64,000 nt of DNA, taken from positions 114,694 to 178,693 of the forward strand of contig NW_003314393.1 in the NCBI RefSeq assembly GCF_000143415.4. The letters are read 5' to 3'. Made by a program: the position numbers and the translations under genes. Each line of letters opens with the position of its first letter. Within the stretch, counting starts at the first letter, position 1. This document shows, piece by piece, positions 12,691 to 62,814 of this stretch. Under the pieces are notes generated by a model. The model did no database searches and was not told the origin of the DNA. It worked only from the letters and a program-made list of their open reading frames with translations. The DNA comes from Selaginella moellendorffii. Lineage: Eukaryota; Plantae; Lycopodiophyta.

Positions 12691-13391
12691 GACATCTAGC
12701 AGGGTTACAATCAACGGAACCATGGGACAATCCTTCAAACTTGAAAGATCAGTCCGCCAAAGATGCCTCCTTGCCCCCTACCTGTTCCTGTTCATCGCAG
12801 ACGGCCTGGCTTACTACCTTACCCAACCAAAGGGCCCAAAAGGCACTCTGCACTTCAGGACATGAACGAAGCCTCAAAGGAGGACCTCCTATCCTCAGCC
12901 TTTGCAGACGACACAAGCCTGATCGTGGAGGGATCATTGGAGAACCTTTCAAACGTCAAAAGGGACCTGGACTTCTTCAATGAGGCCATGGGATCAAAAA
13001 TAAACTGGCACAAATCAGTAGGACTATGGCTCCCCCCTGGCAGTCCTCCAACATGGGGCACGCAGCTGGGCTTCAAATGGCTGGACACAGAGGAGACCAC
13101 CTGCTACCTCGGTTTCCAAGTCGGATGCCAATATGATCCAGAACCTCAGAACCAAAAAGCAGTTACAAAACTAAGGGATCAACTCAAGTTCTGGGCGAGC
13201 AGAAAACTATCATTCTCAACATGCTACGTGGTGGCAAACAGCATCCTGCTTGGAGCGATTTGGTTCCTAGCAGCATGCTGGAACATGGACAGGCGAACGA
13301 TCCAGGAAATTCGAACCTATGTCTGGAAAGGCTCCTCCTGCGTCTCACGTGGTGGAGCAAAGGTCAACTAGCGGTCAGTAACACTTCCGAA
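12691..13391 (+). mobile_element. LINE reverse-transcriptase C-terminal fragment
   Basis: FADD, KINWHKS, YLGF motifs; interrupted at 13392 by an LTR. Confidence 0.9.
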
Positions 13392-14548
13392 TGTAGCGCA
13401 CGTGGTTTTGACCCTTTATCCTATGGTGATTTACCATAGGATAACACCACGAAGCGGAACCTAAACCCTCTTTGTGCCACGTGACATATGCCACGTGTCA
13501 CATGCCACGTGTCCATGCCACGTGTCCATGCCACGTGTCTACAGGAACCCGAGGTTCAGGGCCTTGGGCCACTGAACGAAGGAACAGTGCAAAACTCCCA
13601 AGCGTGAAGCCAAAGAGTGATGGAACCGAACCACGGAGCAACTCCCAAGCATAAAGCCCAAGGAGCGAAGGGACAGGAGCCCGGAGCGACTTGGAACAGT
13701 CCTAGAGTAATCAGCATCCCAATGCTAGGACCAGCACGCAAAACGGAGCCAAACGGAGTCTGACGCTATTTCGGCATACCGGTGGCCTAACGCGAGGATA
13801 TGGGTACTCCACCAACTAGCATGGAATGGAACTTGGGCTTAGACCCAAGCCGGATGCAGAACAAGGATAGGCACGCAAGCGGGAGCTAGACTATGCCTCA
13901 GGTTGGTCGGCCATACCCGACCTACCCACTATCCCTACTATACATTTGGAACCCCCCACAGCCCCCCCCCCTTTGAGGAACACACGCTTTGGGCTTTCAC
14001 CCCAAGCCTCCCTTAGTATCAGGAGTTAGTCTCTGGGACAAGCTCGAAACTTACTAAATATGGAATGTCCTTAGATTGCGAATTTGGACACGGGACGAAC
14101 ACCATTGTGTTCAGGCCGATCTCTACATTTCGTAGATATGCCAAATGAGCTAATCTAGACACTTTCCATAAATAGCATTTGGGACCGAAATGAGACCAAC
14201 ACAAAGGGTATGATAGCGAAGGTGTTTGGCAGACACGGTAAGCTATCATCTAGCGATATTGAGGGACCAAGCTCAATATCGCGGGGGTTCCCTACACTAG
14301 CAAGTGCAAGTCAAGGAATGAGTTTCTCTAACCAGGTCAAGTATGCTTGACAAATAGCACGTAGGAATTCCGTCCTTATGCCCATCTGGTCAAGTGCACA
14401 CGCGAAGACCAGTTTCTCAACTAGCTTAGGCGGAGACTGATAACGGGCCCAGCAATACTGACCTTCTGCCATCGTGGCAGTAAGGTAAGAGTGTCCGTAA
14501 GGACTAGCTGACAGGTAACTTTCGATACCCAAAGTCACATGCGCGACA
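13392..14548 (-). mobile_element. 3' LTR of a Gypsy-type element (family A), 1157 bp
   Basis: TG...CA ends; polypurine tract AGGGGGGAGAG at 14549-14560 on the minus strand; homologous to 60921-62814. Confidence 0.85.
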
Positions 14549-16764
14549 CTCTCCCCCCCTAGGGAAGATCGACGTCCTCGTCGATGCACACTCGAGTCTA
14601 GAATACCGCCAAGGAAACAACTCCAGAAAAAGTTCACGGTACTCACACTATGTGAGAAATGCACCAACTTAAATGAGTTAGGAGGCAACCTCTTTGTCTA
14701 ACGCGGATGCGCTACCAGCTCAGACACCTTCCGGCCGTCGCCGACAAGGAAATGACCAACAGAGTCAGCCACCCTTGCTGCTCTGGTTGTCATCCAGCTT
14801 ACAAAAGTGTGATATGCCCTGCCCGCAGAGACATAGAGAGAGGAGCCAGGGGCCCCAACCCTCCTAAGCAAAAACTACTGTAAATAGGCAGTTAGAGTTG
14901 TTTACACGGTCACGCCCTTTTAACGGAAGAAGGAACATCGACAGAGAGGCGGGTTATGTGACCAGTCGACAGTAGCTACCCCATGACTAGAGATTTCAAC
15001 ATGCACACGAAGTGCCGAAGCCAGTCTGCCTATTACTGACCCAAACTCAAAGATCAATAGATGGACAATATCAAAGTTATAAACAATGATATCTTAGAGT
15101 CTTAAGTATCAGTGAATATACCTTAGATTAGAACACAAAAGTATTCCAAGTAAGTTATCATCCCATAAACTAATAGTAGAGTATAGAAACCACCAAGATC
15201 ACAATAGATGGAAAACATAGGATTCACCATCCAACAAAATTCAATAGTCAATGTATCATCAAGAAAACTCAATGATAAATCTTAACTACTGAAGATGGTA
15301 GATAGTATGCCAAACAACTTACCAAAGATAACTCCAAGAACACAAAGCATCATTAACTGACAAGCACAAGGCTCGCGAATGTATCACCAATAGGAAATAA
15401 CATCCAAATCTATCAGAACTAACTCGAACAATAATCAACAGAATATAATGAATGTGGTAAGACCAACAACCATTCATTTATGTCAACTATCGCAGAAGAT
15501 AATCTGAATAGATCCCGGTCAACAATATCAAGGAACTCGAGTTGCTCAAGCAAGTGTCAGCAACATCCTACTAATGTCTCAAACCCAAGAGACCAATCTA
15601 GAGCAAACCACAAAGAACATGTGGTATTGCGAAAAGCCAAAAGTCATCAAAGAGAACAACTAACTACCATAAAAGGTCATCAATCATCCCATCAATAAGG
15701 AGATGCAGAATCATCGTCAAAGAAGGAATCCACCATCCTGAAGAATGGCAAATCATTCGATATTAACAATAATCAAGCAAATCCTTTTGACAAGGATAAT
15801 CAACTATCCTAGATGATAGTTAATCATCACCAATGATTGCTAGATGCAAAAGCCAACTTCAATAGTGAAGCTAATGAACTAAAATGCCTTCCCCAACAAC
15901 TTCTAACAAATGGAACAATGAGCATAAAACTCAAATAACCAAAAGCTCGAAGAAGTTTATAGCCAAGTCATGCCTAGCAATGATCACAAGTCTTGCATTG
16001 AACTAACTTCAATGCTAAAGAAGAAATCATGGTGTAACCCACAATATCCTCCTCAACACATCCATAAGCTAGACTTCATAATGCCAAAGCTAATGAAGAG
16101 CATATCTACATCAATCCAAAAGCTAAGCATAACGAAGCTAAACTCAACAAGTGATCACCAAATGATCCTCCATGAATCCATCTATAGCAAGACGTAACTC
16201 ACTTCATAACAAGCACAAAAAGAATCATCAATGATTGATATATCCTAATGTAAACCCAACAAGGGACCAACATCTTCAATATCAATCACTAACTTTTCCA
16301 CTTGTGGAGTTAGCATAGTCCTCGACTAAATCACTTTTCAAGGAAAAGCCAAAGCTTATCCTCTACTAAACAATCTTGTCTGGACACAACTAACTCAAAC
16401 TTGCCACTTAGTTCGTTTGAACATCAACACAGTTGCTAACTAGCAAATGTATGAATGCCAACAACATAAAGCTACAACCAAATCATCAACACTATCTGCA
16501 TCGAGACTAATAAAACTCAATATTAATCGAGAGAGAGATATCTCATTTCACTCGAATCTCAATAACAACAATGTCAATGTTAAGGCATCACTTTACTGCC
16601 ATCAACACCAGAACAAAGCTAGAAGAAAGCATGAGTGAATCACCACCCAAAACTCTCTAGCAACTAAGCTAACCAAAGTCAAAGATACTATACTTAGTAT
16701 CCAAGACCAATCTTTCAACATTACTCAGGTACAGATAACACTTCCTCAAGGAGTGATTCACCCT
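14549..16764 (-). mobile_element. Non-coding or degenerate internal region of the family A LTR element
   Basis: Adjoins the PPT; strand-skewed composition, no recognisable ORF. Confidence 0.55.
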
Positions 16765-17926: not shown

Positions 17927-20900
17927 TCCCCCCCCTCTTTCCCCAAGGAAAAAAAGCAAAAGCAAGAAGAGGGCCACGCCTGATTGGAGGAACGGACACC
18001 TGAAGCACTGGAAAGGGACAGAAGCACCCGAGAAGCAAAACAAGTGCCAATCGCTCCAAGTCCAGGCCCTTAGAACAAGGCAACTTCCAACCAGTCCAAT
18101 GCGGCGCCCACCCTATCCGATGTCACAGTCCCAGTTCCGGGGGAGATCCAAGTCGAAGCCAATGAGATCCTTATGGAGCTACAACAACACCAAGTCCTAG
18201 AAGCCAAGACACTCGTTCTTGCGATCTTTGAAGGAGGCAAACCTGACCGGGAGTTAGCCAGGCAGTGGTTGGACAAATGCTTCCAAGAGGTAGGAGTTGC
18301 TTTTCGGGGTCGACAGGTCACATTCCTCGGCCACAATTGCTATAGCATCGAAGTCTGCACCGAGACGAACCACCACACACTCATCACCACACAACGAATC
18401 ACGCAGCCAACCTACAAGTGCTTCTTCTACCGCTACCCGCCGGGCTTCTCACCAAGCCAAAAGGAGACGATCCATAGGCCGACGATGGAACTGGACCTCA
18501 TCATCGACGACCTCTCCAAAACCAACAACACCCCGGTGTTTCTGGCCATGATGGTTGAAGGGTTTGCACAGTACTTGGGGAAAAAGGCCACTCGGGAGGA
18601 ATCAGGCGGACAGCTCATATATGTCCTGTTCACAGGTAAAGCTATCCCCTACAAGATTCGGATGCTTGGCAAGGTGTACCTGGTCCACATCGTGGAGTCT
18701 CGCACAACACCCACAACCACACCAGCACCATCCGCACAAGTTGAGAGCTGCAAGTGCAAGCGAAGCCCGGCCACTCGGACCGTAACCTCAAAGAGACCAC
18801 CTGGGCGGGATTCAGTGCACCACACTGGATGCGCACAGGGATGGAGAGCTTCGCCCAATCGCTCCTCAGGATGGGGTGCTGCTCCATCAGCTCAACGGTT
18901 GCCCTCTCCAACCCAGCCTCACATGGAACGGTCACCGGAAGTGAACACCCAACCCCACGCCAAAGAATCCACCTCCAGGTCCTCTCAACGCCTGCAGGTC
19001 CGTCTCTGGATGCATGTCAGCACCTCACAACCAAGGCAGTACCTGGCGGTGTGGCGTTCACCCACAGGGTACACTCTCCCATCCTTCCATATGGCACGGA
19101 ATCAGCTCCCGGACCAGGGCCTTCATGCTTTCCTTCAGGCCTCTAAAATCATCAACGACATCCCGTACCGAGTGGAAGTGGACAAGTGCACTATAGTGGG
19201 CAGCAACATGGACCTGTATGCAGCCCTCCTCACCAAAAGCGGCGTCATCCCCACGAGAGGAGGGAGAGATCGCGAATTCTCGTGGGTGGAATGCCCACGC
19301 TTCACATGGCGAGAACGTCAACGCAGAGGCATACAACGTCGTTTGGACCGCTTCTACCTCACCATGGATCTGTGCATGCAAGGGGGGAAGTTGGACATTG
19401 ACAACACTTACACAGACTTCTCGGACCACCATCTGATCAGACTCACACTTCCCTTTCAAAGATCGAGAGGTCCAAGGAAGCCAGGTACCATACCCAAGAA
19501 GTTCTTTGAGGAGCAAGCCAACAATAATCGGGCACACGAGCAATGGAAAAAACACAAAGGGAACCTACACTCCTTCACCCTTCAAATCGCTCAAGAGGCT
19601 CGAGCCAAGATCCAAAAAGATAGGAGAGGCGACACCATGATCCAGCCCAACCAGACGGCCCACAACCGCGACCGAATCAATGCTTTCTACGGATTAACCA
19701 TCTCGGAACACAGGATGCGTAAATTCTAGACAGCCTTTTTAGCAGCCAAACACGCATGCCTTGAACGACTAAACCTGCAAGAAGATCAGCGCCATCGTTG
19801 GTGGAAGGTGGATGAATCGATCGTATTCACCCTACCCAACACGGCATCCTTGATATGAGCAGAGCTAAACCGATTAGAGTGATTCAAATAGAGAAAAAAA
19901 CTGCCAACGTTGATCCATTGATCCCAGAAAAACAATACGCTTGCCTCTACTGGTTCCGCCAACAAACCCTGGATGAACTCAAGTGGGATCCTGCAGAGTG
20001 GCATTGGAGGGGAACCACGTGCAAGGACTTCTTCCAGTACGAGACCAAGCTAGGCCGCAAACTGATCAAGGTGCCGACTCAATCCTCCCTCATCCGGAAA
20101 GCAAAGGCCCAACAGATCCATTCCAGGAACCACTCACACTGCATCAACAAGATCTGGAAGGGGCGCTGGAAAGCTAAGAACCGCTACTTCATGTGGCTAG
20201 CCCAACAAGAACGTCTCCCCTCTCTGGTCGCCATACATCTTCCGAACACAGCCTGCAAGACCTGTGGCGCCACAGAAACACAGCGACACATCTTATGGGA
20301 ATGTCCGACAGCACAGGAAGTATGGGAAGGTGCAGCAGCGGTATTCAAACGAACGTCAACCGGAGGAGCTGCAATCACATATGAATCAGCACTCTGGGGT
20401 AGCTTCATCCAAGGAAAAACAAAGAATCCTGATGCATGGAAGTGGAGACACATAGGGTTTAGGGTTTAGGGTTTAGACCAGACCTCCAACATGGGGCACA
20501 GAGCTGGGTTTCAAATGGCTGAACACGGAGGAGACCACCCGCTACCTTGGCTTCCAAGTCGGACGCCAGTATGATCAAGAACCTCAGAACCAAAAAGTAG
20601 TTACAAAACTAAGGGATCAACTCAAGTTCTAGGCGAGCAGAAAACTATCATTCTCAGCACGCTGTGTGGTGGCTAACAGCATCCTGCTTGGAGCGATATG
20701 GTTCCTGGCAGCATGCTTGGTTTGGTCCAGATTGATCGTCTCACTCACGGCCCGCCTAGACACGCTGATCAAAGGAGGCGTGGAAGGGAAGATAGCGAAG
20801 GAGAAGGAGCAGCACAGGAAGTATGGGAAGGTGCAGCAGCGGTACTCAAACGAACAACAACCGGAGGAGCGGCAATCACATACGAATCAGCACTCTGGGG

Positions 20901-48342: not shown

Positions 48343-49420
48343 TGCTAGCCCCAAGAATCGCCACTCAACATTTGCACTTGGTCCAAGTGCTCCACGTGTC
48401 CAATCCCATGATTAACACTCAAAGATACCACCAACATATTAACCTATTACACTAAGGCCATACCTATTCACCTTCGCCACACTGATGGTCCAACACGACC
48501 TACATCATAGTCCTGTCTCTAAAAAATTGGGCCATCCATCCATGAATGGTCATCTTAGATCCACTCCTTAGCATCCTAAGTATGCCCGTAGACATAGGGA
48601 ACAACTTTCCCTAATATCCCTTTTTCAGTCCCCATTAAGTCCCTTTTTGTCCATGGCTATATTTGCCAACACTGCCACTAGGTCACGGCACACCGACCCG
48701 ACCACTAAATCCCATTGTCTTTTGGGACTTCCTCACCATGTGACCGTATCCTTGGTCACTACACTAGAGGATTGCCCTTTTTCCTTTCCATAGTCTAGGA
48801 CTTTGGGATAACATTTCGAAACACTGTGGCACTATACAAGCCTCATGGGTACTCTCTCTACCTTCTGCCTTTGGGTGCTCTAGCCATGGGGCTAGAGTGA
48901 GGTTCCATTGACCCACGCTAGGTATCTAATGCCACCCATGCTTGGACTGGGAGCATCGACCATTCAATCTCCTGGAGGAACTAAAGCCAGCTCTTAAACA
49001 TTTCACTAAGCTAGCCCACTTGTCTGTCCATATTCATTCTATCTTTGGACTCCTCAGTGGATATATCATCACCCAGCACATGCGTATAGCGTTCCTGGGT
49101 CACACTAGCCTTTGCGCCCCCCGCCCCCTTTCCCCCAAGGGGACAACAGTTTATATTAATATTTTGACTCAGACTTGGTCTCAATCTCAGTTTTGGTTCC
49201 ATCTCGGACTCCATCCTATACTCCATTTTGGGTCCATCTAGGACTTCATCTTGGGTCCATCTTGGACTCCATTTTGGGTCCATCTTGGACTCCATTTCGG
49301 GTCCATCTCGAACTCTATCTCTGACTCCATTTCAGGTCCATTTCAAACTCCATCTCAGACTCTATTTCGGGTCCATCTCGGACTTCATTTCAAATCCATC
49401 TTAAACTCCATTTCGGGTCC
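48343..49420. mobile_element. Older copy of LTR-like family B ending in an 11/12-bp tandem array (CCATCTCGGACT)
   Basis: Collinear with 45055-45990; array at ~49190-49420 runs into the gap. Confidence 0.65.
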
Positions 49421-49931
49421 NNNNNNNNNNNNNNNNNNNNNNNNNNNNNNNNNNNNNNNNNNNNNNNNNNNNNNNNNNNNNNNNNNNNNNNNNNNNNNNN
49501 NNNNNNNNNNNNNNNNNNNNNNNNNNNNNNNNNNNNNNNNNNNNNNNNNNNNNNNNNNNNNNNNNNNNNNNNNNNNNNNNNNNNNNNNNNNNNNNNNNNN
49601 NNNNNNNNNNNNNNNNNNNNNNNNNNNNNNNNNNNNNNNNNNNNNNNNNNNNNNNNNNNNNNNNNNNNNNNNNNNNNNNNNNNNNNNNNNNNNNNNNNNN
49701 NNNNNNNNNNNNNNNNNNNNNNNNNNNNNNNNNNNNNNNNNNNNNNNNNNNNNNNNNNNNNNNNNNNNNNNNNNNNNNNNNNNNNNNNNNNNNNNNNNNN
49801 NNNNNNNNNNNNNNNNNNNNNNNNNNNNNNNNNNNNNNNNNNNNNNNNNNNNNNNNNNNNNNNNNNNNNNNNNNNNNNNNNNNNNNNNNNNNNNNNNNNN
49901 NNNNNNNNNNNNNNNNNNNNNNNNNNNNNNN
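49421..49931. other. Assembly gap
   Basis: Run of N. Confidence 0.99.
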
Positions 49932-50341
49932 ATTGGTCTCTTGTATCCCTTTTCTAGAGATCACTTATTGCTTGCTTCATGCTTGTACCTTGAGCACTTC
50001 ATTGGGAGTCAACTCCCACTCTCGACTGTCCAAGTTAGCACTTTTAGTCCAAACATGTTACTCTTGTTTGGCTTCCACTACCAATATAGCAATATAACAA
50101 TATACCCTTGAGCCTCACTTTGACTGATGTTGACCACATGGTCAAAACTAGAACCTAACAATTCTTACCCCCCAACAAAGTTCATGTCCCAAAGATGAGT
50201 TTTACCGGTGATCATCCTTTCTGGGAAACCCTGCTCAAGCTCCTAGTCCATCTTCCATAGCTATATATATTAAGGAGGCATTACTTCATATGGACCAGTA
50301 TATCGATGGGAAAGTTTGTCACTCTTCCCTATTCATAAAGG

Positions 50342-53300
50342 TGTTGGGGGAAAGAGGGGTGCCTCCCCCAACGCTCGCTCAAACACGAGATGTGCTTTAA
50401 TGCTCTTTGCAAAAATGCCCCCCCTTGCTCTTGTGGGGCAAGGGTTTTATACAAGGAAGATGGGGAATATTCTGAGGACCAAAATAATCCCTCTCTTTCT
50501 CTCACTCTCTTGGTGGCCACGCCCTAACATGCGACCACGGTGGATCGCACTGGCTCCAGACACGTGAGAACCCTCTGAAGAGTGTAGAGTGTACCTCTGC
50601 TACTGATGCCAAGTGTTGGTAGCTGCATGAAATAGTAGAAACTCTAGAAAACAAAGTGGAAAAGAAAGAAAAGAGGTAGGTGTGAAATTTGGAGATAGGG
50701 AGGAAAACCTGGTGGGAAACCCTGTAGTTAAACTGGACCCTAAAGTTAAAGAAAAGTGTAGAAAAAGTATGAAAATAGGAGGAAAATAGAGGAAAAAGAG
50801 TGAGCATCCAAAGAATTTAACCCGTACCTGGATTTTGGCTCAAGAAAGTGTAATATGCAAATGTAGCCTTTTGATGACTTCCAGCATTTCTCGTGTTTGA
50901 GTGAGCATCGGGGGAGGCTCCCCTCCTTCCCCCAATAAATGGTGAACCCGATGTGAACGCGTAGGACTTTCTGAAGCGTCATTTCTCTCTTTTTCTTTTG
51001 GCTGCAGAATTTGGGAAGGAATTCCTAGTTTGTCTTGTTTTGGTTTTGTTTGATCTTGGGCGTGTTGGATAGGTCTGGAGCTCCTCTTTCCAGCAAGGTA
51101 TGGCGCTCATCAAGCCGTGCAGTATTTGAAGAGATACAATGTTTCTTGGCTCGGTTTGAGGAACAGTTTAGGGTTTTCACTTTCTTGCCTAGATCCTCAG
51201 CCCAATTTCTCAGAGTAGTGCACTTAGGCTTGTAAATCTAGCCTAGATCTACGAGTAGGGGTGATTCTTGGCACTAGATTTGGCCAAATTGGCGGCATAC
51301 AAAAGGATTTTCTTCTCCGGCTAGACTGGGTCATTTTTGTGGCAAGAATTCGTGCTCCTCCGGGCTTTGTTTTGGATGCCGTTTGTTTCTAGAGGTGCTC
51401 ATGGTCCTAGGCTTTCCGAAAATACCAACAGCGCCTTATTATCAATCTACATCAGTGATATGCACATGTTTTTCCACAATATTAGCATTCTGGGCGACCT
51501 CTTTTTGGATTTTGGGGAATATTGAGGTGGCTTCTTCCCAAATTCCTACAATAGAGGGTAGACAGGGCTAAGCCTTTTCCAACAAGCCCACCAACAGTCA
51601 AAATGGAGAAGGATCAAGACCAAAGGACTCATTTTTCTCTTTTGGGTTAAACTTTGTTAGGGGTTCCTTGGGAAGGAAGTAATCTTCAAGGAATAGATAG
51701 CCGTAGGAATAAGAACAAGAGGAGCAGGAACAAGAGTTGGCGTAGGAACAGGGACAGTAGGAACAAGCACAGGGATAGGAGTTGGTGTTAGAGCAGGCGC
51801 AAGAGTAGGAGTGAGAGCGGGGGGGGTTACCAGTTACAGGTTACAGGTCCTTAGTTACCGGTTACTGGTTATTCTAGCGGCTACTCTAGCGGCTATTTCG
51901 ACAGTTACCCTACGGGTCAATGGTTACATGTGCTTGAGGCCTACATCTCCTTCCATTTTGACCTTTATTTCTCTTTATCATAAGCATTTTGGGCAACTTT
52001 GAGCAACTTAAGCACTAGCCTACAGTCTTCTTGCTTTTGTCAACCCAGTTGCCTTGACCGGGCATTTGCAATGTTCAGGGTATTTGATGCTAGTACAAAC
52101 TAGACGTATGACAAACTGGCACCCTTTTACCATACCTCGAGGCCCTAAGGTACGAAGTAACCTTTCTAACATCCAAAGGCAGCTTAGGTACGACACTACA
52201 CCTTCTCGAGCCGAGTCCTCTTCATCCTCGGCAAATTCCAGTGACTTAGATCTACGAGCTATGGCGCAGCCACCTTTAACTCGACCTCAGCTCCATGTTC
52301 TGCAGAAGGGGAGTGATCTGCCGACCTTCTTAGGTGTTAGAACAATTTCTTTAACATCGCATATCAATTGCTTTGATTACTACTACACCACAAACATGAT
52401 TGTCAATGATGATCATATGTGCTGCGACTTCTTGCAATCTCTTGAAGGCAAAGCAACAATTTGGGTAGATTTTCTCCTCCTAGAGGACCGGATAGACTTC
52501 CAGACACTACTTGCTTCTTTCAGAGAACGCTTCGTTGAAGAAAAACCCACAAATCAGCTACTTGTCGACCTCTTTTCGTTTCGGCAGGGTGCTCACAAGT
52601 CTATTCCTGACTACATCACATGGTTTCGAGCTTACTGGAAGTAGTGTTGGGATCGCAGGGTAGTCCAAGATGAGCAACAGGGGATCACGGCATTCACAGC
52701 AGGTCTGCGTGGGAACTTGCAATGGAAACTTCTTAAGAAGACGTTTAGGTCTTGCCACGAGGCATTTTCATTTGCCACAAAGATGGAAAGAGAACTTCTT
52801 GTCAACCTAGAGATTACTAGAGTTGATTTCGACCAAGCCATCACCCCATCAGAGTCACCTTGTGCAACTGTTCGCCTATCCACAACAAAGCTCATCGCTA
52901 TTGAGCATACACCTCCGGCTATTGAGACCTTTGCCAACAAGATGCAGCAGCTGAAGGAGATCATTCTTCAGCAACAATCACACCGTGACAAACTACTCCA
53001 GGAGCTGATGGAGTCCAGGAAAGAGGCCCGCTACAACTTGGGAACGCAAATCTAAATCTCATTGGTGCACTCACTGTGAGACGAACACACACAACACACA
53101 GTGCTGCTTCAAGCTTCACCCAAAGCTTCGGCCTTCATCTTCTCAACATGTCCAACAACATCCCTTTGTTGATAATTCCACATCATCTCGGGGTCCAGAG
53201 ACGTATCAGAAGCAGTTGGAGTGACAAGCAATCGAGGCAGCCCCTTCGTCAAGCAAAGGCAAGGCACCAGCCTCATTGGTCAACACAATTTTGGTAGCCA

Positions 53301-56300
53301 AGGAACTCTATAGGCAACAGCAGCAAACTGCAGCCACTCAAGCCCAAGCGAAGAAGAAGGCACCCGCTCAGCCTGCCACAGATCCCCTGGTGCCGGTTGA
53401 GAGAGAATCTCTATCGGCACCAGATCCAGTGACACAGTGTCACTACTCTCTTCTCCTCCTGAGATCTCACCAACAACTATTCCTGTTCTAGAGCCGGTTC
53501 TTCAACAACTAGTTGACACTCTCGTCACCTTTTTGCTTCAAGACATGTTGTGTCTTATCCCGGGATTCGGCTAGCATTTAGAGGAGTTTGCACGGTCAAG
53601 AACAAAAGAGAGCACTCTCAAAAGGACTCCTCAAGAGGTGCACATTGTTGACATGACAAGACATGGTGGAGATCCTGCTCCATTCTTCTTCCCAGTGTAG
53701 ATTGGTACTTCCTCTTGTAGGATGGATGCTTTGGTTGACTCCGGTTCGGGATGCAACATTATCTCTCTTGAAGCTGCCCTTTTATCACAGTTACAAATCA
53801 TTGAAAGCTCCTCCATCGTGCTCAAAACCTTCACCAACCACACTATTCCTCCAGTGGGCATTTGCTATGGTGTCAAGGTCTCTGTGTAAGGTGTTATTTC
53901 TGAGGTGGATTTCCTCGTGGTTGACTACCAACATCTTGGAACATCCTCTTTGAAGGACTTTATCGTCCTTGGCCGCTCATGGCAAGTCACAGCCCATTGC
54001 ACTATTGACAGCGAACAAGGCAAGATAGAAATTAGTGATGGAACCCATAGCACCACCTTTCTCAACAACCACGGCAGAGCTCTTTCTCAGCAAGCCAAAC
54101 AGGATCAAAATAAGATGGCCTCCACACCATACTTTCCTCCTGAGCTCACAAAGGTTTTTCCTGAGTTGGCAATGGAATCGACCATCTATATGACTGATGC
54201 TTTCTCATGCAAAGCAATTGACATGGTTAGAGGTGACTCAGATAGCCCAAGACATCTCTCAACTTCACTCTCTTTATTTGAGAGTAAGGCCGAGCCCCTC
54301 GTCATGCCCTCTTTATTTGATGGCGGGGCTTATAGGGTACGGGCTCCCATATCCAGCTTTTCGAAGTGTTTCTCGATAAGGGAAGGGCTTCTTGACTTGT
54401 TTCTTGCATGGGACCGACTCTCTCTTATGGAGCTAGATGACACAGTCACTCCAAACTAGGCTCATCTTTCACAAGACACAGCTAAACTCAATTCTCCTCA
54501 GCAACTACCTGAGGTGTCACACAACCAGTATCTTCCTACTAAAATCGTTGTAGCTGATGACTCGAAGCGTATTTTGTCATGATGTTTCTTGAAGATGGAG
54601 GATGACATCCAGACACAGAACTGGCAGAAAGAATCAAGCCAATCAGACATGCTGCATGCGAGTTATAGCTCTTTGAGTTCACAATTTCCTACTGTGGAGC
54701 TCCTGGTATAGGTCCAAATGTATTGCACTGAAAATTCAATACCAGACTTGGACTAGACTTCAGTGGAGGATCTTCCTTCACTTGCAGAGTACTTAGTATA
54801 GTCCTTGCATTGGACATCAAGCGCTTAGAGCATCAGAAGCAAAGAGAACAACAGACAAAGACTCTGGATCCAATAGTAACGTTTTTGCATGACTTGCTAG
54901 AGACAGTCTTGCCAGATGTGGTGTCCCTAGCATCTTTATTTGAAGAAGAGGACACTCCTATGATTACAGCTTATTTTGACGGTGCTTTTTGCCCCACAAA
55001 CCAGGTTGCCGGCATTGGAGATTGGATGATTGATTATGCGGAGAACAAAGTAGCCGACCTCTCTATCACTTTACCAGCAACATCAGCTAATGAAGCAGAG
55101 TACTTGGCGGCTATGAGAGCCATGAAGTTAGCCACAGATCTCAAGTTTAGGCAAGTCACTTTCGTTGGAGATGCACAACTCATCATATGCCAAATTACTG
55201 GAGAATACCAAGTCCGCAAAGAGAACCTGAAAGAGCTATGGCAGCGGGTGGTCAACCTACAGGATGAGTTCTCTTAGGTGACTTTTCAAAGTGTCCCTCG
55301 TGAAGAAAACTTTTGGGCAGACAGGTTATCACATCAAGCAATCACCATGATGCAAGAGGCAAAAGGCACTCCCTGCTCTTTGGTTTCCAAGGTCAGGGAG
55401 GAATCCAAAATAGATGAGCCCCCTGAGCCCAAGGTTTCTCCAGAATCCAAGGTTCATGCCATTTTCTTAGGTGATGACAAGGACCCGATCTTTATTGCCA
55501 CATTGCTTGCTTCAACGAACGCAGCAAAGCTCTTGGATCTCCTTCACTATTTCAAGGACGTGTTCCCTTGGGACTACAGCCAGCTTCCAGGAGTTCCCAT
55601 GGACACGATCATGCACAGTATTATGCTTTCAGAGTCAGCCAAACCAGTCCGTCAAAAGTTGCGGCATTTCAGCCCGGCAGCTCACTCTGAGATGAAGTTG
55701 GAGATTGAGTGATTTCTGGCAGCCGGCTTTATTTACCCTTTGGAGAGCTCAAAGTGGGTGGCAAATCTCGTCCCTGCATGCAAGGCAAATGGAAAACTCC
55801 ACCTCTACGTTGACTTTCGAGACTTGAACAAGGTAACTGCGAAAGATCACTTTCCGACTCCATTTATCAATGCGATTGTGGATGAGATGATTGGACACTG
55901 GTACTACTCTTTCATGGATGGCTTTTCAGGGTACAACCAGATCTTCATTCATTCGGATCATCGAGATCTTACAGCCTTCCGGACACCTTGGGGCGTCTTC
56001 ACTTTCAACATCCTCCCATTTGGCTTGTGTAATGCCAGAGCTACTTTTCAGCGCTTTATGACCCACGCCTTTCACAACTTGATTAGAGGCACCTTGAGGG
56101 TGTATATGGATGATCTGTGCACGACCTCTTACTCCTTTGAGGATCACCTTGTGCATTTGGAATACATCTTCACTCGCTGCCGACAAGACAGGTTTTCATT
56201 GAACCCGGCAAAGTGTAAATTTGGGGTGACTAAAGGGTGGTTACTAGGCTTTGATGTCTTGCAGGATGGGATCAAGCCCCAGGTAGCTAAGGCGCAAGAG

Positions 56301-59300
56301 ATTCTGGATCGGAACCCACCAACCAACTTGAAGCAGCTTCGTAGCTTCCTCGGGCAAATGGGTTTCTTTTGCCATTTCCTCCACAACTATGCTGCACATA
56401 CACGGCCTCTGATAGCTCTGCTACAACACAATGTTCCATTTGTCTAGGGTGAGTCCTAGCAACAAGCCTTTGAATCACTGAAGCAGTCACTCCACACAGC
56501 CCCGGTACTCCAACCACTAGAGCGTCAACTTCCTTTCGATATTTACATCACAACGGGCACAGAGGCTTTTGGAGTATGCCTTTGCTAATGTTCACAGCCT
56601 GGGAAGCCACCACATGCAACATACTATGCCTCACAATCGTTCAAGGAGACTGAGAAGAAGTACGTGGATGCGGAATAAGAAGTAGTGGTTGTTGTTTACA
56701 CCTTAGAGCAATTTCATCACTTTCTCGCTGGAGCCCGTATCCATTTCCACATCTATTTTAATGTGCTGATCTTTCTTTTACAATGACCAGTTCACAGTCT
56801 TGATACTTTATCTTGGATTGTGACCATCCAAGAGTTCCAGCCAACTTTTCACATGCGGCGGAAGCATGTGATGGATCCGAGTGAGTTCTTGGTTGCTGAA
56901 GCTACTTCCTTTGTGGTCCCAACAGCATTACAGGACATTGCGGTGTACCTAGATTTAGGTTAGTTCCCAGTAGACTCCTCACCCATGTAACAAAAGGCAT
57001 TGGAGATCCGAGCATGGGGGTTTTGCCTTCTCGATAGACACCTTTACAAGAGGACTTCTCAGGAAGTTTAGTTGCGGTGTGTGGGGGAACACGAGGTCCT
57101 TGAGCTCCTTCATGCTTTCCACTCTTGTGCGGGGCATTTCTCGGGACGGGTCACAGCACAGCTCCTCTTGTGCCATGGCTAATTTTGGCCTCGAATTCAC
57201 CAGAACAACTTGGCCTATGCAAAGGCATGTGAGCAATGCCAACGGTTCAACCCCTAGAGCCATGTTCCACATCTTCCTTTCCAGCTCATCACTTCTCTGG
57301 GTCCCTTTTTCCAGTGGGGACTTGACTTCGTTGGCCCGATCAACCCACTGAGCTCAAAAGGACAGCATACATCATCATGGCAATGGACTATTTCACAAAA
57401 TGGGTTGAAGCCACCCCTCTACGACAGGCAGATCAATAGTCTACAACAAAGTTTGTCTACAAGTACATCATTTGCCAATTAGGAGTTCCTGCTGTTTTGA
57501 TTTCCGATTGCGGCAGCAGCTTCCTTAGACAACTGATGCAACATCTTCTCTAGCAGCTGCAAGTCAAGCACGTGAAGAGCAGCAGCTATTATCTTGAGTG
57601 CAATGGCTAGGCAAAGTCTAGCAACAAGATATTGAAAATAGTCATCTCAAAGCTTGTGGAGGATCACCCAAGGCACTGGCACAAGCACTTGGTTATGGCA
57701 TTGTGGGCCTTTCAGACGTCCTTCAAGACATCCATCTCCGCAACCCGATTCTCCCTTGTCTATGGGACAGAGGCTATGCTTCCAGTGGAGATCCAGGTGC
57801 CATCACTCTCACTTTCACTTCAATACGCAACAGCGATGCAACTTAGCGATGAGGACAAGCTTCATGCATGTGACTTGGAGGTTCTTGCCTTGGAAGAACA
57901 GTGATGATCCACATCAGAACATCTACTTTGAGGCAAGCTAAAGATCAAGTCAGTCATTGATCACCAGCGTTCTGCTGAACCATTTGAGGATGGCGATCTT
58001 GTTCTACTCAAGGAGTTTACACTGCCTTTGAAGTTCTCCCCTCGCTGGACCGGCCCCTACTTTGTCTAGTGACACATCGGAGGTGGAGCATAGGTGCTAG
58101 TTAATGCTGATGGACATGAGCTCCCACACGCTCACAACCACTCTCATCTCAAACGCTTCATCCGGTGAGGCGTTCCTCTTCTCTTCTTTTTCTTTTCTCC
58201 CTTTCTTTCACTTTACTTTCATGGCTCTTTTTCTTACTTTCAGGGGGTGTTTCTCCATTGGACCATGGCCCATGCCTTGGATTTTGTGCTCAGGCTACAT
58301 TGCCGTTTGTATGGATGTTCCTCGCTTGGCTCAGTCTATGTTCCAGGTTCTTTGGCCCTTCCCTTACCATTACTACACCCCACACATTCCCCTCACTCAT
58401 TCCATATCATCCACACTTATAGTTCCATCACCAATCGCTTCTAGTCTGGTTTCCTACACTTATCTCTAGATGCCCGTCTTGCATCTTTCATTCTTTCACC
58501 ATCATTCACATCTCCATTTGAGGTCATATTTACACCATACCACGGACACACATACATGCACCAACAGCAAAAGACACCACCTCATTTGGACTTGCCGTTT
58601 CTGAGATATCCTTACGACCATTTGCCGACGACGCACTAGCTTTTTGGAGCGACTTTCTTCCAACTGGGTGAACCTGGTCATTCAAGGCACCTAGGTGGAC
58701 CTTTAGGCGAGGCCATAGAAGCCAAAGCCACTTTCTTCTACTCCAACACTTAGTGGACACATGTCACCTCTCTTTACCGGCAACCCAGCGACTACACCAT
58801 TCTTTTTAGCTGCTGACTTCTTCAGTCCGACACATCAGACTAGCCAACCTTCTCAAAGTGCCACCCCATCTCAGTGCTCCACCATATCACTCCACCATAT
58901 CGGTGCTGGAGCAGGCGCAGGAGTATGAGCGAGAGCATGTGGTTACCAGTTACAAGTTATAGGTCCCCAGTTATTGGTTACTGGTTACCAGTTACCAGTT
59001 ACCGGCTACTCTGAGTAGTCAGCGCTTACTCTACAGGCTAATAGTTATCAATGGCCACCTTTTCAGAGTCCCACCACCATCTCGGCACTCCATCATATCA
59101 CTCCATCTTTCATCATTTCCTCACTTACCACCCTTGGGCAACGCATCCCCTCTTCTACCTCTCTTTCTTTCTCAATTTCGGCCTATCCTTGGAGCATACT
59201 GGAAGTCATCAAGAGGCTGCATTTGCATATTACACTTTCCTGAGCCGAAATCCAGATACAGGTTAAGTTCTTTGGGTGCTCACTCTTTTTCCTCTATTTT

Positions 59301-59743
59301 CCTCCTCTTTTCACACTTTTTCTACACTTTTTTTCAACTTTAGGGTTCAGTTTGACTACAGGGTTTCCCACTGGGTTTTCCTCCTTGTCTCCAAACTTCA
59401 CACCTACCTCTTTTCTTTCTTTTCCACTTTGTTTTCTAGAGTTTCTACTATTTCACGTAGCTACCAGCACCCTAAACCCATCAGTAGCAGAGGTACACTC
59501 TACACTCTTCAGAGGGTTCTCACGCGTCTGGAGTGAGCACAATCCACCGTGGTCGCATGTTAGGGCGTGGCCACCGAGAGAGTGAAAGAGAGAGGGAATA
59601 TTCTGGTCCTCAGAATATTCCCAATCTTCTTTGTATAAAACCCTTGCCCCACAAGGGCAAGGGGGGGCATTTTGGAAAGGGCGTTCGAAGCATTTCTCGT
59701 GTTTAAGCGAGCCTTGGGGGAAACACCCCTCCTTCCCCCAACA
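50342..59743 (+). mobile_element. Tat-lineage (TatI-like) Ty3/Gypsy retrotransposon, gag-PR-aRH-RT-RH-INT, with inverted ~540-bp terminal repeats; decayed
   Basis: Gag ~52260-53055, LVDSGS protease ~53730, extra RNase H (YFDGA...NEAEY...GDAQL...WADRL) ~54960-55330, RT (VYMDD) 55740-56250, integrase ~57050-57800; ends TGTTGGGGG...CCCCCAACA; flanks AAAGG/AAAGC. Confidence 0.85.
50940..50956 (+). promoter_or_regulatory. Primer-binding site, probably tRNA-Trp
   Basis: TGGTGAACCCGATGTGA, one mismatch from the complement of the plant tRNA-Trp 3' end (TCACGTCGGGTTCACCA, recalled). Confidence 0.7.
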
Positions 59744-60789
59744 AAAGCAGTAAGGTGTTCCGCCGCTCACTTGATGGAAAGATCACTCGCACAAAGATGA
59801 GATCACCCACCTTATATTCTCTGAATTAATGATGCTCATTAGCAAACTTCTCCACTCTATCCTGAGCTGCCTACAAATTCCATTTGCACACCACCAGAAT
59901 CTCATCAAGTTCTGTGGCCAAATTACTCGCCTCAGAATCAAGCTTATCTTGAATTTCCTTACTCAAATCCAATCCCAACTCCACCACTGTTTAGGGATGC
60001 CTTCCAAACATGGAAAAGTAAGGACTTAGCTTGGTTCCACTGTATTGGCTATTATTGTAAGCAAATTGCACCAATGGAAGATAAAGAACTCACTATCCTG
60101 GCCTTTGACCAATGCTACAATGTAACATATCCTCCACCACCTGATTCACACATTCAGTTTGCCCATCCGTTTAAGGATGATCTCCACTTGAGAGTTTCAA
60201 AGTCACTTGCATAGCCTTTGTAAAGCTCTTCCAAAATCCACTGGTGAACTTTGAAACTCGATCACTAATAATGTCCTTCGGGAAACCAAAATCAAGAAAA
60301 AACCTTCTCCAAATAAACCGCAGCCAAGTTTGAAGCGGTGATAGTCTTCTAAAGAGCCAACAACGGCATATACTTCGTCAACCAATCCACTATGACCCAT
60401 CCTTTAGTCTCCCTAGACCATGCTATGCCACTTCTTGAGGTTCCTTACCACCCAACCACCCCCGAGCTACCTCCAAAGCTCCACTATGCTGCCGTTCCAC
60501 TATGAGCCCTAGGGTAGGTTAAGTCCTAATATGCCTTAATATACCTTTCAGCCTCCCTTTGACCAATGTTGACCATATGGTCAAAGCCTTATATTGGTTG
60601 CCAAGGACATTTACAGACAACAGCAACAAACTACAACCACCCGAGCAAAAGGAAAGAAGAAGGTGATCGCTTAGTCAATCAAAGATCCCTTGATATCAAT
60701 TGCAAGTGACTCTCTGTTTGCACCAAATTTAGTAACATAGTGAGTGGCTTGTAAACTCCCCTTCAAGTCACTACTCTCATCTCCTCCTA

Positions 60790-60920
60790 GGATCTAGCTT
60801 AGGTAGATTTTGAACTTATGAGTTGAGCTTACGACTTCTCAAACACAAAAAAAACATTGGCTCATCTTGAACCAACATTTTTTCATCTTTCCAATTTTGA
60901 TTTAATCTATATTTCCAAGT
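60790..60920 (+). mobile_element. MULE left-arm fragment interrupted by LTR A
   Basis: Matches ~29160-29302 (CTTCTCAAACACAA...GATTTAATCTATATTTCCAAGT). Confidence 0.75.
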
Positions 60921-62814
60921 TGTCACGAATGTGACTTCGGGTATCAAAAGTTACCTATCGGTTAGTCCTTACAAACACTCTTACCTTACTGCCACGATGG
61001 CAGGAGGTCGGTATTGCTAGACCCTTTATCAGTCCCTCTTGTTCAAGTGTTAGTAAACTGAACTTTGCATCTATACTTGGCCGGATGAGCATAAGGATGG
61101 AATTCCTAAGTGTTTATTCAGCCAAACATACTTGGCCCGGCTTTTTAGTTCTCTTTTGCTTTATCTTGCACTAGCTTGACAAGAACCCTTGCGTATTGAG
61201 ATTAGTCCCTCAATATCGCTACATGATAGCTTACCGTGTCTACCAAACACCCTCGCTATCATGCCCTTTGTGTTAGTCTCAATTCGGTCCCAAATGCTAT
61301 TTATGGAAAGTGTCTAGATTTGCACATTTGGCATATCTACGGAATGTAGAGATTGTCTTGAACACAACGGTGTTCGTCCCATGTCCAAATTCGCAATCTA
61401 AGGACATTCCATATTTAGTAAGTTTTGAGCTTGTCGCAAAGACTAACTCTTGATACTAAGGGAGGCTTGGGGTGAAAGCCCAAAGCATGTGTTCCTCAAG
61501 GGGGGGGGGGGGGGGGGGGCTGTGGGGGGTTCCAAATGTATAGTAGGGATAGTGGGTAGGTCGGGCATGGCCGACCAACCTGAGGCATAGTCTAGCTTCC
61601 GCTTGCGTGCCTGTCCTTGTTCTACGTCCGGCTTGGGTCTAAGCCCAAGTTCCATTCCATGCTAGCTGAGCTTTTGAGCTTGTCGCGAATGTGACTTCGG
61701 GTATCGAAAGTTACCTGTCGGCTAGTCCTTACGGACACTCTTACCTTACTGCCACGATGGCAGGAGGTCGGTATTGCTGGACCCTTTATCAGTCCCTCTT
61801 GTTCAAGTGTTAGTAAACTGAACTTTGCATCTATACTTGGCCGGATGAGCATAAGGACGGAATTCCTAAGTGTTTATTCANNNNNNNNNNNNNNNNNNNN
61901 NNNNNNNNNNNNNNNNNNNNNNNNNNNNNNNNNNNNNNNNNNNNNNNNNNNNNNNNNNNNNNNNNNNNNNNNNNNNNNNNNNNNNNNNNNNNNNNNNNNN
62001 NNNNNNNNNNNNNNNNNNNNNNNNNNNNNNNNNNNNNNNNNNNNNNNNNNNNNNNNNNNNNNNNNNNNNNNNNNNNNNNNNNNNNNNNNNNNNNNNNNNN
62101 NNNNNNNNNNNNNNNNNNNNNNNNNNNNNNNNNNNNNNNNNNNNNNNNNNNNNNNNNNNNNNNNNNNNNNNNNNNNNNNNNNNNNNNNNNNNNNNNNNNN
62201 NNNNNNNNNNNNNNNNNNNNNNNNNNNNNNNNNNNNNNNNNNNTCAAAGGGGGGGGGGGCTGTGGGGGGTTCCAAATGTATAGTAGGGATAGTGGGTAGG
62301 TCAGGCATGGCCGACCAACCTGAGGCATAGTCTAGCTTCCGCTTGCGTACCTGTCCTTGTTCTACGTCCGGCTTGGGTCTAAGCCCAAGTTCCATTCCAT
62401 GCTAGCTGGTGGAGTACCCATGCTCTCGCATTAGGCCACCGGTATGCCGAAATAGCACCAGACTCCATTTGGCTCCGTTTTGCGTGTTAGTCTTGGCATT
62501 GGGATGCTGGTTGCTCTAAGACTGTTCCAAGTCGCTCTGGGCTCTTGTTCCTTCGCTCCTTGGGCTGTATGCTCAGGAGTTGCTCTGTGGTTCGGTTCTG
62601 TCACTCCTTGGCTCCATGCTTGGGAGTTTGGCACCGTTCCTTCGTTCAGTGGCCCAAGGCCCTGAACCATAGGTTCCACACCACTGTCCTGTGGACACGT
62701 GGCATGGACACATGGCATGTGTCACGTGGCATAAAGAGGGTTTAGGTTCCGCTTCGTGGTGTTATCCTATGGTAAATCACCATAGGATAAAGGGTCAAAA
62801 CCACGTGCCCTACA
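60921..62814 (+). mobile_element. 5' LTR of a family A element (partly duplicated around a gap), followed by a PBS and non-coding internal region to the window end
   Basis: TGTCACG...CTACA; PBS TGGTATCAGAG (tRNA-iMet) at 62817-62827. Confidence 0.85.
61881..62243. other. Assembly gap
   Basis: Run of N. Confidence 0.99.

Follow-up and report, generated by a model that had tools for sequence, protein, structure and literature searches.

The 64,000-nucleotide stretch of Selaginella moellendorffii DNA analysed here (contig NW_003314393.1, positions 114,694 to 178,693 of assembly GCF_000143415.4, forward strand; hereafter the window, in whose coordinates all positions are given) carries at 50342-59743 a decayed Ty3/gypsy-type retrotransposon whose two long terminal repeats (LTRs) lie in inverted orientation. 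Instead of a 5' LTR in the usual direction, the left end bears a complete LTR turned backwards, followed by a short direct piece of the U5 region and a primer-binding site (PBS), while the right end bears an LTR in the normal orientation. The element is most likely a single, old insertion produced by a rare accident of replication, not a member of a new class of mobile element. The features of the two termini, including the candidate copies of a target-site duplication (TSD), are as follows.

50337-50341, no strand: left candidate TSD, AAAGG, a 4/5 match to the right flank
50342-50883, minus strand: complete inverted LTR, with its U5 end outward on the left and U3 nucleotide 1 at 50883; full-length match to 59200-59743
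50884-50937, plus strand: direct 55-bp U5 stub, LTR positions ~490-544
50940-50958, plus strand: TGG-initiated PBS, 2 nt past the LTR end, with position and spacing as in direct-LTR relatives
59200-59743, plus strand: normally oriented 3' LTR, running from TG to CA; its TATA box (59634-59639) precedes three small hairpins
59744-59748, no strand: right candidate TSD, AAAGC, read from the flank

The 544-bp LTR at 59200-59743 matches the reverse complement of 50342-50883 from end to end. Both the repeat finder and BLAST recovered this pair (89.4% identity over 547 columns, E = 0), and the original prediction, made from the sequence alone, had placed the inverted terminal repeats at 50342-50884 and ~59199-59743, which is accurate to within 1 bp. 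A global alignment of the two LTRs gave 490 matches, 38 transitions, 11 transversions, and 8 gap columns, corresponding to a Kimura two-parameter (K2P) distance of 0.098. The right LTR begins with TGGAAG at 59200 and closes with CA, and the inverted left LTR, ~90% identical to it, is likewise complete from TG to CA. Since the left outer end reads TGTTGG... and the right outer end reads ...CCAACA, both are U5 ends, that is, the same LTR end is presented twice. Likeness among the three U5 copies of the element (those of the two LTRs and the stub) breaks off exactly at the CA, and unrelated flanking DNA lies beyond. Two LTRs in direct orientation were not found in this copy; the left LTR is inverted, and a mere 55 bp stand in the direct orientation.

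This direct stub had also been predicted, as ~55 bp of U5 ahead of the PBS, and it was recovered at 50883/4-50937, where it corresponds to LTR positions ~490-544 and is 86-87% identical to both other U5 copies. The three U5 tails are mutually equidistant, with 7 differences in 55 for each pair and private changes on each branch; taken together with the K2P distance of 0.098 between the LTRs, this equidistance fits a common origin of all three. At the inner junction, U3 nucleotide 1 abuts U5 position 490 with a microhomology of at most 1-5 nt, and the A at 50883 is assignable to either side. The repeat finder also reported the resulting pair of inverted 53-bp arms at the left end (50344-50396 and 50883-50935). 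An AA spacer of 2 nt separates the 3' end of the stub from the TGG-initiated 19-nt PBS at 50940-50958, which, apart from a single C-to-T change, presumably complements the 3' end of a plant tRNA-Trp. The right LTR has a TATA box at 59634-59639, followed downstream by three small hairpins; this box is conserved in the inverted LTR at 50446-50451 on the minus strand, where it points left, out of the element.

At the right end, the original prediction had noted neither a polypurine tract nor a TG start for a conventional 3' LTR. The former observation held, as no purine-rich tract lies directly before 59200; the latter did not, because the LTR opens with TG at that very position. The segment 59130-59199 contains a pyrimidine-rich run in place of the polypurine tract, ending ~25 nt upstream of the 3' LTR. 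As for the flanks, AAAGG (50337-50341) and AAAGC (59744-59748) agree at four of five positions, a level of agreement (at least 4/5) that random 5-mers of the window reach in 1.7% of cases. A decay of ~9-10%, as seen between the LTRs, predicts one mismatch in 5 bp ~40% of the time, so the pair is plausible as a decayed 5-bp TSD, and the suggestion that it is such a duplication with one mismatch is probably correct.

Because the assembly is a gapped draft, with N runs beginning 410 bp to the left and 2.1 kb to the right of the element, and because repeats are error-prone for assemblers, the inverted LTR might be an artefact in which the 5' LTR was flipped by chimerism in a read or clone or by a wrong join within a repeat. 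However, a single gap-free contig stretch (49932-61880) contains the whole element with its two junctions and two flanks, the nearest N runs being at 49421-49931 and 61881-62243. Moreover, the inverted LTR differs by ~9-10% from the right LTR and by 13% from the stub, so that it is a sequence in its own right, not one read placed twice. The inner junction offers no overlap that could mislead an assembler, and the outer end coincides with an exact LTR terminus and with a candidate TSD that matches at 4/5 positions. We therefore regard an assembly artefact as very unlikely.

One colinear Ty3/gypsy element, encoded on the plus strand, makes up the interior. Several stops within the reading frame and one or more frameshifts interrupt it, and its domains follow in the order gag, protease, additional RNase H, reverse transcriptase (RT), native RNase H, and DDE integrase. 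Its features are as follows.

51784-51926, plus strand: leader block rich in GGTTAC, repeated directly at 58902-59047 with 72-82% identity
52012-52641, plus strand: gag (capsid) remnant (Pfam Retrotrans_gag, E = 5e-7)
53890-54456, plus strand: protease region, probable end, placed by an 'LGRSW'-type motif and position only, with no Pfam match
54942-55412, plus strand: additional archaeal-type RNase H upstream of RT, with one stop codon inside (Pfam RVT_3, E = 2e-10; translation; tblastn)
55443-56849, plus strand: RT and native RNase H/tether, with in-frame stops (Pfam RVT_1, E = 2e-24, and RT_RNaseH_2; tblastn colinear with the polyproteins of relatives)
56931-58159, plus strand: remnant of a DDE integrase, frameshifted near 57362 (tblastn/tblastx to relatives, in which Pfam Integrase_H2C2 and rve cover the matching residues)
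58902-59047, plus strand: the leader's GGTTAC-rich block (51784-51926) repeated in direct orientation, here in the 3' untranslated region

Within the RT region, the Pfam matches extend over 55713-56444 (RVT_1) and 56460-56585 (RT_RNaseH_2), and the additional RNase H and RT share one frame with only stop codons between them. In the integrase region (56931-58159), the stop-free pieces of the window itself are too decayed to give a Pfam match, and the assignment was made through the relatives. The two GGTTAC-rich blocks, each of ~145 bp, lie ~850 bp past the PBS and ~150-300 bp before the 3' LTR, respectively. Rfam gave no match in 49900-60500, and ARAGORN found no tRNA gene within the 64-kb window.

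This layout is that of Tat structure #2, a form with an additional RNase H upstream of RT that is described from clubmosses and gymnosperms (PMC10508981). The element shares with it the succession gag, protease, additional RNase H, RT, RNase H, and integrase, the clubmoss host, the TG...CA LTRs, and a PBS 2-3 nt past the LTR, and differs from it by the inverted left LTR, which concerns this copy and not necessarily the family. Judged from its sequence, the element is thus a Ty3/gypsy element of the Tat lineage, structure #2. A second rearrangement as the source of the position of the additional RNase H was considered and dismissed in view of this published structure. The interior being colinear and in the normal structure #2 layout, nothing else in the element appears to have been rearranged.

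The position of the additional RNase H varies among relatives in metagenome contigs. An extra RNase H-like segment lies downstream of integrase in three contigs with closer RT relatives of 46-48% identity (L007:5683-6102, L009:9785-10162, and L011:7883-8254), and between RNase H and integrase in L013, L019, and others, compared with upstream of RT in the window element. The domain has changed its place repeatedly within the clade.

Inverted terminal repeats are otherwise characteristic of the DIRS elements, of which DIRS-1 of Dictyostelium is an example and which are described (PMC3950715, PMC7192593) as having a tyrosine recombinase and no DDE integrase. Like DIRS, the window element has inverted terminal repeats and, internally, a segment that is the complement of one repeat end. 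However, the internal complementary region of DIRS covers both termini, whereas the window element has one 55-bp segment only, beside the left repeat. It further differs from DIRS by its DDE integrase remnant, its tRNA-type PBS, and its probable 5-bp TSD. DIRS elements make no TSD. A Pfam search found no tyrosine recombinase domain in any stop-free piece of at least 40 aa, and the initial classification as an integrase-type Gypsy element, not a DIRS element, is supported by the DDE integrase homologue.

It is conceivable that the copy represents a family-wide architecture, namely a Tat sub-family that replicates with inverted terminal repeats (two U5-type ends), thereby combining a DIRS-like geometry with a DDE integrase. 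The left repeat has, at its outer end, the complement of the internal 55-bp segment, which recalls the DIRS internal complementary region and would fit such a family. However, the left TATA box faces outward and the stub is promoterless, so that no R-to-R genomic RNA would be made, and the integrase region, with no tyrosine recombinase beside it, is homologous to that of normal Tat elements. A BLAST search found no second copy of the LTR or of the whole element in the 64-kb window. The best RT relatives in the protein collection were 47-49% identical, as found by a word search that reached proteins of 134-427 aa, longer polyproteins lying outside its reach. A profile scan of metagenome contigs returned distant relatives only, with 41-48% RT identity, and a degenerate U5 motif had no exact match in these contigs. 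Every relative with enough flanking DNA (L042, L069, L074, and L076) has ordinary direct LTRs. In L069, L074, and L076, the LTRs end in ACA, which is followed by a 2-3-nt spacer and a TGG-initiated PBS, and the stub-spacer-PBS layout of the window element is the same as in these direct-LTR relatives; a purine-rich tract precedes the 3' LTR in L069 and L076, and L069 has a perfect 5-bp TSD (CTGAT). Between the two readings that the original prediction had left open, the outward TATA box, the promoterless stub, and the direct LTRs of the distant relatives disfavour a family with two U5-type ends, which we consider highly improbable, and a one-off aberrant cDNA is favoured.

Long inverted repeats around RT were also seen in two metagenome contigs of distant relatives. 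That of L015 (1-2927 versus 12041-14966) is 99.97% identical and lies at both contig ends, and it is probably an assembly artefact. That of L052 (2992-4009 versus 12644-13661) is 96% identical and reaches a contig end; it may reflect nesting or a similar inverted-LTR form.

We consider it probable that the element arose as a one-off aberrant product of reverse transcription, which integrase inserted through two U5 ends. Read along the bottom strand, the minus strand crosses the PBS and 55 nt of U5 and then continues into U3-R-U5 in the manner of plus-strand strong-stop DNA. U3 nucleotide 1 is the start of plus-strand DNA synthesis. An accident at the stage of reverse transcription is favoured because the junction and the ends are nucleotide-exact as replication sets them, which random chromosomal breaks would not be. 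In the route that we infer, the main minus strand would have halted ~55 nt past the PBS, inside U5. An LTR-length minus-sense strand, copied from plus-strand strong-stop DNA and thus having the normal tRNA-primed U5 end as its 5' end and U3 nucleotide 1 as its 3' end, would have switched end-to-end onto this minus strand stalled 55 nt beyond the PBS, and mutual extension would have yielded a blunt duplex that terminates in U5 on either side. The linear cDNA would then consist of the reverse-complemented U5-R-U3, 55 nt of U5, the PBS, gag-pol, and U3-R-U5, with the ...CA terminus of U5 at both ends. Integrase would have processed and joined these two like ends and generated a 5-bp target duplication, AAAGG, the right copy of which would later have mutated to AAAGC. 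With both LTR promoters facing outward, such a copy would make no genomic RNA and would decay in place. Indeed, both TATA boxes point outward and the 55-bp stub is promoterless, which implies that no terminally redundant genomic RNA could be produced and that the copy was dead on arrival.

Several points weigh against this interpretation. It is drawn from a single copy of the family, the candidate TSD is short and imperfect (4/5), and the particular route of strand transfer has been reconstructed. Transcription is predicted to start ~30 nt past the TATA box, near LTR position 465-470, which does not match the junction at position 490, so the junction is not simply the 5' end of the RNA; that explanation had been considered and was discarded, as the TATA box lies 55 nt upstream and is too distant. 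No pause-inducing hairpin was found adjoining LTR position 490, and the 3' LTR lacks a conventional polypurine tract, the usual priming site of the plus strand, ahead of it.

The same geometry could alternatively have arisen after integration, by chromosomal rearrangement of a normal copy. Two versions can be formulated. In the first, the 5' LTR was inverted by a blunt break at the boundary of flank and LTR together with a 55-nt staggered break over positions 490-544, the fill-in of which makes the inverted 55-bp duplication; such a staggered-break inversion yields precisely the arrangement seen and leaves the original TSD in place, and the 53-bp inverted arms that it would leave do exist. In the second, an element of the same family inserted backwards at LTR position 489/490 and was later deleted down to a single LTR. 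Plant genomes often show nested insertions within a family as well as illegitimate deletions, and the window element itself adjoins, and probably sits inside, an older retroelement. Nevertheless, both versions need a break or deletion end at the exact outer LTR boundary with 1-bp precision, for which there is no mechanistic reason and which would be expected about once in hundreds of events. No separate TSD encloses the inverted LTR (AAAGG to its left versus GCATT to its right), and the nested version predicts a PBS complement to the left of 50342, where there is none. In that version, the 4/5 match of the flanks would be fortuitous (1.7%). A rearrangement after integration is therefore unlikely, although less so than an assembly artefact or a family-wide architecture. 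Two simpler routes were rejected: a two-break inversion cannot generate the extra inverted 55 bp, and recombination between inverted LTRs of two elements leaves LTR orientation unchanged.

The older retroelement is represented directly to the right of the insertion, at 59793-60377 on the minus strand, by the decayed integrase core of a different Ty3/gypsy-like element (tblastn, E = 4e-8; a weak Pfam rve match, E = 9e-4). This element was probably the target into which the Tat copy inserted; the left flank gave no match to it, and continuity across the insertion site was thus not seen. Further outward on the left, a 23-bp tandem array of at least eight overlapping units (49187-49420) abuts the 511-N gap at 49421-49931, ~0.9 kb from the element. 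On the right, two direct copies of a 201-bp repeat (60920-61120 and 61680-61880), 96% identical and spaced 760 bp apart, extend up to the second N gap. Elsewhere in the window, 18173-19729 holds a 518-aa open reading frame that is 72-94% identical to Selaginella endonuclease/exonuclease (LINE-like) proteins. All of its matches are S. moellendorffii proteins, which places the host in this species or one very close to it.

The closest precedent for an aberrant cDNA inserted through two like ends is a Moloney murine leukemia virus (MLV) provirus with inverted LTRs, which is cited in PMC5778647 (Colicelli & Goff, J Virol 1988) as having used two U3 sequences for its integration. Like the window element, it is a DDE-integrase retroelement in which one unit carries inverted LTRs and an aberrant cDNA presented the same LTR end twice. 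The MLV case was a laboratory isolate with U3-U3 ends, whereas the window element has U5-U5 ends and is an old genomic fossil of a plant retrotransposon; in the latter, moreover, the inverted LTR stands in for the 5' LTR, of which a 55-bp U5 stub is left. Beyond DIRS and this 1988 case, we found no natural U5-U5 or inverted-LTR retrotransposon insertion in the literature searched, whose incomplete coverage makes this weak evidence of novelty. The event is a variant of a known replication accident, with U5-U5 ends in a full-length coding Tat element.

A broader possibility is that inverted-LTR insertions are unusually frequent in Selaginella. Tat-like elements that lack a polypurine tract might prime their plus strand in an error-prone manner, so that strong-stop-type strands would often be attached backwards, and their integrase might readily take U5-U5 or U3-U3 pairs. 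We regard this as improbable; the copy in the window would then be one example of a replication quirk specific to the lineage and not an accident standing alone. If the interpretation as an aberrant cDNA is true, the element would be a natural, full-length fossil of concerted in vivo integration of two U5 ends by a retrotransposon integrase. It would also mean that reverse transcription can join a whole LTR backwards, exactly at the start site of the plus strand, and that plant genomes acquire long inverted repeats from dead-end products of this kind.

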